From the IMG/VR virus record IMGVR_UViG_3300042923_000569, positions 248,001 through 312,000 of that record: a DNA stretch of 64,000 nucleotides; one strand, 5' to 3'. The notes beneath the pieces are model-generated. The model was given only the letters and a program-made list of their open reading frames with translations. It ran no database searches and was not told where the DNA came from. This document shows positions 39,784 through 64,000 of this stretch, in pieces (the stretch's first letter is position 1; each line of letters begins with the position of its first letter). The translations under genes and the position numbers were made by a program.

Positions 39784-40113
39784 TTATTTAAGCTTAATGG
39801 AGGACGCAATTTCTTCCATTAGTTCTGCTGTAAATTCAATTCCGAACACTTCACTATATCGTTTAGAAGTACGCTCTAACCAATTAGTACTTTTCGTTGT
39901 GAAACCGTATTGTACGTTCTTAGCTGCGTTGTTGTAAGAGTTCCAAGGCTCGTTAGACGATGCATTTAAACGACCCCAATCAGTAATAGCAATGAAGCCT
40001 AGTGCTGATTCTTTACCCCGAAGAATGTTATAGACAATATGGTCTTCTGCGGTGTGTTCTTTCTTACTTTTCCAGGTTTTGATTACGGTGATGTATTGTT
40101 CTTTATTTAACAT
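39784..40113 (-). CDS. conserved phage hypothetical protein
   Basis: HIVYNILRGK motif; own AAGGA SD; preceded in frame by an amber-interrupted leader. Confidence 0.8.
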   Translation of the reverse strand: MLNKEQYITVIKTWKSKKEHTAEDHIVYNILRGKESALGFIAITDWGRLNASSNEPWNSYNNAAKNVQYGFTTKSTNWLERTSKRYSEVFGIEFTAELMEEIASSIKLK

Positions 40114-40194
40114 GATATGTTCCTTTAGATAATTTAATTTAGTTTGTTCTGAATTAAGTTTATCTGGAGGACCAGTACTAAATTTCTATAGCAT
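40114..40194 (-). promoter_or_regulatory. Met-Leu-amber leader, in frame with downstream CDS
   Basis: AAAGGT SD, ATG CTA TAG then KFSTGPPDKLNSEQTKLNYLKEHI-M with no other stop. Confidence 0.5.
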
Positions 40195-40222
40195 AATATT
40201 ACCTTTGTGCTTGTTTAATTTG

Positions 40223-40305
40223 AGCGGAATACAGGATTCGAACCTGCGTAAACTATTCGCCTCTTGCTTGGAAGGCAAGTGCTCTACCAACTGAGCTAAT
40301 CCCGC
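40223..40305 (-). tRNA. tRNA-Gly(UCC) with long variable region
   Basis: CTTGC-CTTCCAA-GCAAG; U73; 15-nt variable region AGGCGAATAGTTTAC. Confidence 0.88.
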
Positions 40306-51389: not shown

Positions 51390-51513
51390 TGGCGGCGAGT
51401 ACTGGATTCGAACCAGTGACCAGGACATTAAAAGTGTATGAGTTATGGTTGCTGCGGGAATCCAATCAGGATTCCTTGGGTTCTACCTGCTCTACCAACT
51501 GAGCTAACTCGCC
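51390..51513 (-). ncRNA. tRNA-Lys(UUU) interrupted by a 48-nt GAAUC/CAGCAA module (RNA I)
   Basis: Removing 51438-51485 gives a 76-nt cloverleaf with GGACA-CTTTTAA-TGTCC and CCA. Confidence 0.88.
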
Positions 51514-60098: not shown

Positions 60099-60173
60099 TG
60101 GTGCCCCTGACAGGATTCGAACCCGCGAATCACGGTTTTAGGGACCGCTGTTCTACCATAGAACGGCAGGGGC
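60099..60173 (-). tRNA. amber suppressor-like tRNA (CUA)
   Basis: GCGGT-CCCTAAA-ACCGT; full cloverleaf and CCA; C8 and C33 are non-canonical. Confidence 0.75.
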
Positions 60174-63674: not shown

Positions 63675-63998
63675 TCATTTAGCACCTCCGTTGAAGAGTT
63701 GATACTTACGGAAGATACTACGCTGTTCAGCAGTTACTGGAGCACTTGCAAAGGCGGTGAAGCCATAATCCCAATCAGGTTCGAAGAACTGAACAAAGTC
63801 AATCCCTAATCCCTGGAGTTCATCATATGCTTTTTGTAACTTATGTTTATTCTTACACGAAATGACAATTAGAGAACTAGTCTCAGTACTGTTATTTTCG
63901 AAGGCCAAGCCGCTTTCATAAGCTGCGTGGTTAGATTGTACTACTATTTGCTCGATTGGAAGATCCGTTCTTACAAATACATAAATCCAAGTTTTTTC
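63675..63998 (-). CDS. peptidyl-tRNA hydrolase Pth2-like protein (5' end beyond the window)
   Basis: Frame extends to the edge: WIYVFVRTDL...VQSNHAA...LIVIS...FFEPD...TAFASAP. Confidence 0.75.
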   Translation of the reverse strand, partial: EKTWIYVFVRTDLPIEQIVVQSNHAAYESGLAFENNSTETSSLIVISCKNKHKLQKAYDELQGLGIDFVQFFEPDWDYGFTAFASAPVTAEQRSIFRKYQLFNGGAK

Positions 63999-64000
63999 AT

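Follow-up and report, generated by a model that had tools for sequence, protein, structure and literature searches.

Why would a jumbo phage that otherwise uses the standard genetic code keep a Met-Leu-UAG start, followed by a conserved RNA hairpin, in front of a small gene? The locus that raises this question lies in a 64,000-nucleotide stretch of DNA (positions 248,001 to 312,000 of IMG/VR virus record IMGVR_UViG_3300042923_000569), hereafter the window, which is part of a 357,873-bp phage genome with direct terminal repeats (genome coordinates are given with the prefix C1). The phage is related to Pectobacterium phage CBB, Cronobacter phage GAP32, Serratia phage BF, the Yersinia fHe-Yen9 phages, the Erwinia pEa_SNUABM phages, and Xanthomonas phage XbC2. 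The region is the phage's tRNA-rich zone; it contains 26 tRNAs identified by ARAGORN and two more identified by Rfam, nearly all on the minus strand.

The initial annotation described an SD, ATG CTA TAG, and then 24 sense codons that include a GPP motif and continue in frame into the ATG of a conserved gene with its own SD; noting that diproline motifs stall ribosomes, it inferred a sensor of amber read-through or RF1 status that controls the downstream gene, possibly linked to the CUA tRNA and a Pth2-like hydrolase. The observation is correct, although its coordinates were plus-strand numbers for a minus-strand feature (Table 1). The leader reads ATG CTA TAG and then AAA TTT AGT ACT GGT CCT CCA GAT and onward, that is, exactly 24 sense codons (K F S T G P P D K L N S E Q T K L N Y L K E H I) before the ATG of the 109-aa ORF. 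In a single sequence this is weak evidence: the genome contains 239 copies of ATG-NNN-TAG, 36 of which are followed by 24 or more open codons, and about 30% of random 24-codon windows are open; however, only two of these sites also have an SD-like motif upstream.

Table 1. Features of the leader locus and of associated loci (window coordinates unless prefixed with C1; all on the minus strand).
Feature	Position	Description	Basis
tRNA-Gly(UCC)	40222-40305	84 nt with a long variable region, directly upstream of the leader on the same strand; its 3' end lies 16 nt before SD1, so the leader probably starts at a tRNA processing site	ARAGORN; Rfam, 67.6 bits; same position in relatives
SD1	40201-40206	AAAGGT (AAGGT core invariant), 6-7 nt before ATG1	Sequence; comparison of loci
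Mini-ORF	40186-40194	ATG CTA TAG; with the next two bases (AA) invariant in 16 loci; ATG ATG CTA TAG in some lineages	Sequence; comparison of loci
5' arm of hairpin	40166-40179	AGTACTGGTCCTCC; invariant, anti-SD-like, encodes S-T-G-P-P in the zero frame	Comparison of loci; folding; pair counts
Three-tier hairpin	40115-40178	Outer helix pairs the 5' arm with SD2 plus spacer; middle helix ((N)GAUA/UAUC(N)) and inner helix (UUAAUU/AAUUAA) carry compensatory changes; starts 5-7 nt after the UAG, with no indels in this spacing	Per-sequence MFE; RNAalifold; pair counts
SD2	40121-40126	AAAGGA, SD of the 109-aa ORF, in the 3' arm of the hairpin	Sequence; folding; accessibility model
109-aa ORF	39784-40113	phrog_22448, function unknown, no Pfam family; restricted to this phage group; start codon (ATG2) at 40113	ORF and family comparison
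121-nt tRNA match	51393-51513	Insertion of about 45 nt after the anticodon-stem region; not called by ARAGORN	Rfam, 47 bits
tRNA(CUA)	60102-60173	Amber-suppressor anticodon; perfect acceptor stem, C8 and C33; not called by ARAGORN	Rfam, 50.6 bits; sequence; homologues with CUA in relatives
PTH2-like ORF	63675-64000	Start, GAGGAA-N7-ATG GCT CAC TAG, lies 2-13 nt beyond the window end (C1:312013-312002); TAG is codon 4	Scan; comparison of loci; Pfam
188-aa gene	C1:311112-311678	Just outside the window (positions 113-679 of extracted sequence L036); TAG at codon 47; overlaps the PTH2-like stop (ATGA)	Comparison with CBB and BF
Second PTH2 gene	C1:317536-317787	Outside the window; canonical family member	Pfam PF01981, E 2.3e-11
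MADE-TAG mini-ORF	C1 about 149095-149122	Outside the window; ATG GCA GAT GAG TAG behind a terminator-like hairpin	Comparison with CBB and BF

Is the pattern conserved, as the initial annotation had proposed to ask? We collected 16 homologous loci (nine phage records and seven IMG/VR or metagenome contigs) that provide 10 distinct leader sequences from about six lineages of CBB/GAP32/BF-like jumbo phages. ATGCTATAGAA and AGTACTGGTCC are unchanged in all 16 loci, and each has AAGGT upstream; in contrast, the downstream protein is only 52-58% identical between lineages, so the leader is better conserved than the gene. The ATG ATG CTA TAG found in some lineages results from a 3-nt indel that keeps the SD spacing. 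The distance from the TAG to the ATG of the ORF is 72 or 78 nt (in frame) in 13 loci; it is 80 nt in BF and pEa12 and 77 nt in one further locus (L021), and in these three the zero frame stays open and ends at the TAA of ATGTTAA, overlapping the start of the ORF. As a baseline, ordinary TAG stops of diverged orthologues are retained as TAG in 3/9 cases in CBB and 2/10 cases in BF (20-33%), and in both relatives in 1/8. The stops of the long ORFs in the genome are TAA (346), TGA (87), and TAG (27 of 460). The identity of this stop codon is therefore selected.

Is the leader conserved as RNA or as protein? When folded alone, each sequence gives the same long hairpin of roughly 60-75 nt, in which the 5' arm AGUACUGGUCCU(CC) pairs with SD2 and the spacer (AGGAACAUAC), followed by a middle helix and an inner helix (UUUAAUU/AAUUAAA). 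On the alignment used for pair counts (A5), 91.5% of the cells are paired and six pairs have changes on both sides; none of 500 shuffles reaches this value, and slid controls give 28-42%. The covariation lies in the inner helices; the outer anti-SD helix is invariant and has none. Substitutions in the leader fall 8:5:10 over the three codon positions, so there is no clear coding signature, and the block AGTACTGGTCC shows no synonymous change at all, that is, the constraint is at the nucleotide rather than the amino acid level. The third base of the second Pro codon (A, U, or G) covaries with its pairing partner (U, A, or C). Thus, GPP is most simply a by-product of an anti-SD-like UCCUCC arm, and we found nothing that supports it as a stalling motif.

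We then asked whether the position of a ribosome would affect access to SD2, using a thermodynamic model with ribosome footprints. SD2 is about 25% accessible both in the free RNA and with a ribosome terminating at the UAG; with a read-through ribosome at the Pro codons, it is 59-75% accessible in five of the 10 distinct sequences (the window, CBB, GAP32, L021, and another of the loci, L031). The increase is weak in three (Yen9 and BF) and absent in the XbC2 type, so the predicted occlusion is partial and lineage-dependent. Because the hairpin starts a short and fixed distance after the UAG, it may act on read-through itself, although this is an inference.

Which tRNA could read the UAG? The Rfam search identified a tRNA with anticodon loop CCCUAAA, that is, anticodon CUA; it is the only CUA tRNA found in this genome. 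It is atypical in having C8 and C33 instead of the near-universal U8 and U33; the CBB and BF versions have U33 but two mismatches in the acceptor stem. CBB, BF (annotated tRNA-Sup), XbC2, Kaldavass, and GAP32 also have a tRNA(CUA), so that every phage with this leader that was checked for one (not including Yen9-03/04 and the metagenomic loci) carries it; the sequences have diverged but the anticodon is kept. The genome is not recoded: there is no excess of TAG-interrupted frames.

Does the phage contain other in-frame TAGs? We scanned for an SD and ATG followed by four or fewer sense codons, a stop, and a long open frame, and then compared the entire genome with those of CBB and BF. Conserved ORFs that lack a start codon, or that are interrupted, were found only behind TAG, never behind TAA or TGA on the coding strand; these are a PTH2-like gene, its 188-aa neighbor, and the present leader. 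In the PTH2-like gene, the TAG at codon 4 is followed by AAT GAA AAA ACT TGG; the SD and the TAG are kept in the window's genome, CBB, BF, XbC2, and Yen9-04, while codons 2 and 3 vary. The first in-frame start codon occurs 31 codons later, after the conserved VRTDL core, or is absent. The gene is 90-95% identical among relatives, far above neighboring genes; seven of eight family members match Pfam PTH2 (best E 5e-6), and the best solved relative is a peptidyl-tRNA hydrolase. A homopolymer sequencing error does not explain this TAG, because BF and Yen9 have GATAAAAC instead of the A-run and Yen9-04 has no nearby ATG. The 188-aa gene has only a weak HD-domain match (E 0.077, below Pfam's cut-off) and is called HD-like here on that basis; the flanks of its TAG are 12/12 and 10/12 identical in CBB and BF. 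Annotators truncated or missed both this gene and the PTH2-like gene. Position 47 of this protein aligns to V, V, N, and S in distant homologues, so the amino acid inserted at UAG cannot be inferred. For both genes, the TAG lies within a frame whose flanks are conserved as protein, and TAG was translated as X only in these two frames; for the leader, the frame is open in all 16 loci, but the constraint is at the RNA level.

Two other candidates were rejected. A hit at genome position 152815 is a false positive located inside the upstream gene in another frame, and an 'ORF' at genome position 312717 does not read like a protein, with no tRNA found there. The MADE-TAG mini-ORF (at about genome position 149100) remains a candidate; it is conserved in CBB and BF and is followed in frame by seven codons and the ATG of a short ORF, but it has no clear SD.

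Beyond this clade, the PTH2-like gene, or its fusion with the HD-like gene, starts Met-X(-X)-UAG in seven additional distant lineages: Salmonella phage Arash (ATG CTG TAG), Ralstonia phage RsoM2USA (ATG TTG TAG; the gene is unannotated), Acinetobacter phage ME3 (ATG ACT TAG), Tenacibaculum phage pT24 (ATG AAA TAG), the uncultured 595-kb phage LR756511 (ATG ACT CAC TAG), XacN1, and Xoo-sp13; in the last two the start is Met-Lys(-Lys)-UAG, followed by four codons and then the annotated ATG. The two domains are fused in the order PTH2-HD in pT24 and HD-PTH2 in XacN1 and Xoo-sp13. Each of these phages carries a tRNA(CUA) (PMC8504454; PMC5852040), often close to the gene (about 0.4 kb in ME3, 0.5 kb in Arash, 2.5 kb in pT24, and 8 kb in LR756511, where it lies apart from the main tRNA clusters); ME3 and pT24 have only about four tRNAs, one of which is the CUA tRNA. 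RaK2 is the one contrast that we found: its PTH2-like gene starts normally, and none of its eight tRNAs has the anticodon CUA. This is a co-occurrence across related and unrelated phages and not a formal independent-contrast test.

We interpret the Met-Leu-UAG element as an amber-gated translational leader that is read through by the phage suppressor, a reading to which we assign a probability of about 0.5. In this view, ribosomes load at SD1/ATG1 and meet UAG at codon 3 (codon 4 in the lineages with ATG ATG CTA TAG); if RF1 wins, a dipeptide is released at almost no cost, whereas if the phage tRNA(CUA) decodes the UAG, the ribosome would run through the leader and unwind the hairpin. In 13 of 16 loci it would then continue in frame into the 109-aa ORF and make a 136-138-aa form; in the other three it would stop at the TAA on top of the start of the ORF, a coupling arrangement. 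In about half of the lineages the hairpin would also bury SD2, so read-through should in addition open the ORF's own start. Output of the gene would then follow suppressor-tRNA activity relative to RF1, and the same logic would apply to the PTH2-like and 188-aa genes. UAG is followed by A in every leader, a context that favors suppression in E. coli. What the comparisons establish is the sequence, its conservation, the hairpin, the co-occurrence with tRNA(CUA), and the two other in-frame TAGs; that UAG is decoded here and that decoding affects the gene are inferences made without RNA, ribosome, or peptide data. The ORF has its own SD and ATG and may be expressed without read-through, and the window's tRNA(CUA) is rejected by ARAGORN. 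The interpretation in the initial annotation is thus partly supported: the link between leader, CUA tRNA, and Pth2-like gene is real at the level of comparative genomics; a sensor of read-through or RF1 status that controls the downstream gene remains an inference, with a link in frame that is not universal; and GPP as a ribosome-stalling sensor is not supported.

Other explanations appear less likely. The gene might simply start at ATG1, with the UAG a sense position read by tRNA(CUA), the 136-aa protein the product, and the hairpin and ATG2 without a regulatory role; the 13 in-frame loci without a stop, the sense-like UAGs in the PTH2-like and HD-like genes, and the same layout in XacN1 and Xoo-sp13 are consistent with this reading, which we consider unlikely but the strongest of the alternatives. 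However, three loci in two independent lineages (BF/pEa12 and L021) break the frame yet keep the leader, the leader lacks a coding substitution pattern, the hairpin covaries, and SD2, ATG2, and the N-terminus MLNKEQYITV are strongly conserved. A search for relatives in which the extension is fused without a stop returned only six proteins, all of the short form. Less likely still is a mini-ORF that depends on termination without read-through, acting as a ribosome loading or standby site or as a lambda bar-like minigene (fMet-Leu-tRNA drop-off at the rare CUA codon) and tuning translation of the gene behind the hairpin. SD1 and ATG-CTA-stop are conserved, the phage lacks a tRNA-Leu(UAG), and it encodes PTH2-family proteins (the PTH2-like protein and a second, canonical one); but this reading does not explain why the stop is always TAG in a genome where 75% of stops are TAA and TAG stops turn over quickly, a ribosome terminating at the UAG does not free SD2 in the model, and the parallel Met-X-UAG starts of PTH2-like genes cannot work without read-through.

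An untranslated element, that is, a processing or stability hairpin behind tRNA-Gly or a protein-binding site (CTATAG and AGTACT are palindromes) in which ATG-CTA-TAG is a coincidence, is similarly doubtful. The nucleotide-level constraint, the covariation, and the location directly 3' of a tRNA agree with it; in contrast, the 3-nt indel creates ATG ATG while keeping the SD spacing, and the zero frame stays open to ATG2 or to the overlapping TAA in all 16 loci although other stop triplets in the leader fall in the other two frames. GAP32 has no annotated tRNA-Gly at this site (a remnant of one may be present), no Rfam family matches the element, and the motif is not a repeated promoter or signal, as ATGCTATAG occurs twice and AGTACTGGTCCTCC once in the genome and there is no sigma-70-like site at the leader. 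The least likely of these readings is EF-P-dependent stalling of read-through ribosomes at GPP(D), with the stall opening the downstream start. G-P-P is kept through synonymous changes (CCT CCA, CCT CCT, CCA CCG), the CC of the second Pro codon is invariant although unpaired in most MFE folds, and a ribosome parked there frees SD2 in half of the lineages in the model; however, the third-base changes covary with RNA partners, the UCCUCC is explained as an anti-SD arm, and the residue after PP varies (D, K, E). The simplest account of all these observations is that UAG is decoded by the phage tRNA(CUA) at a few chosen sites, of which the leader is one; a plain recoded N-terminus, a termination-only mini-ORF, and an untranslated RNA element do not explain the invariance of TAG, the tRNA(CUA), and the parallel Met-X-UAG genes as well.

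How does the element compare with known systems? TAG-recoded phages (code 15; crAss-like, Lak, and jumbo phages) also have a tRNA(CUA) and in-frame TAGs, with a proposed role in gating translation on the suppressor; here the genome is standard-code, and only three loci carry conserved in-frame TAGs, two of them at codons 3-4, right after the start. In prfB (RF2) autoregulation, an early in-frame stop likewise sets up a competition between termination and recoding, so that output reports the activity of the termination or decoding machinery, but prfB uses a +1 frameshift at CUU UGA with an internal SD; in the leader, CUA UAG offers no re-pairing, the +1 and +2 frames close within 2-18 codons, the conserved open frame is the zero frame, and the recoding agent would be a suppressor tRNA. 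A T4 gene 60-type bypass is also rejected, because there is no conserved CUA landing codon (BF has none). Leader-peptide attenuation (ermC, cat, secM-secA) shares a short upstream ORF with its own SD and a hairpin that includes the SD of the regulated gene, and ribosome position in the leader would decide access to that SD; here the leader is closed by a stop at codon 3 and would need read-through, the modelled occlusion is partial and lineage-dependent, and no arrest peptide is shown. In structure-stimulated read-through of the MuLV gag-pol type, a UAG is followed after a short fixed spacer by a conserved structure; the present structure is a hairpin, no pseudoknot is shown, and the system is bacterial with a dedicated suppressor tRNA. 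Lambda bar minigenes are two-codon AUG-sense-stop ORFs with an SD that act by tRNA sequestration and have no conserved TAG requirement.

Many large phages that use the standard code carry an amber-suppressor tRNA with no known purpose; the XacN1 authors state that they could not find its targets (PMC5852040). If our reading is correct, the leader and the Met-X-UAG start of the PTH2-like gene would give these tRNAs concrete targets and would explain truncated or missing annotations in public records (CBB_406, XbC2_407, and Arash gp84c, and no call in BF, Yen9-04, and RsoM2USA). They would also describe a minimal form of stop-codon gating, possibly a step towards full TAG reassignment, in which an early UAG makes abortive events almost free, as would suit a sensor of suppression. 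The papers on CBB and on the Eneladusvirus phages do not mention the suppressor or these genes, and searches for phage suppressor tRNAs together with in-frame amber codons or peptidyl-tRNA hydrolase returned only work on TAG-recoded phages; within the literature searched, the element is undescribed. A broader and more tentative possibility is that standard-code jumbo phages from many host phyla carry a small, ancient amber-suppression circuit, composed of a tRNA(CUA) and a PTH2-like/HD-like enzyme pair whose own synthesis requires that tRNA through a Met-X-UAG start; this would form a feedback or sensor loop on the balance between suppressor tRNA and RF1, into which the CBB/BF-like clade has wired phrog_22448 through this leader and hairpin.

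As to phrog_22448 itself, structural comparison gave atlas TM scores below 0.5. The sequencing runs that were found are DNA contigs, and the contigs examined list no variant in the invariant blocks; the RNA runs contain only small shares. The 84-nt form of the upstream tRNA-Gly(UCC) is also present in the Yen9 phages and BF, whereas CBB and XbC2 have an unrelated, normal 73-74-nt tRNA-Gly at the same place. Elsewhere in the tRNA-rich zone, the 121-nt tRNA match in the window may be compared with BF, in which a 125-nt tRNA-Pseudo is annotated in the tRNA region.
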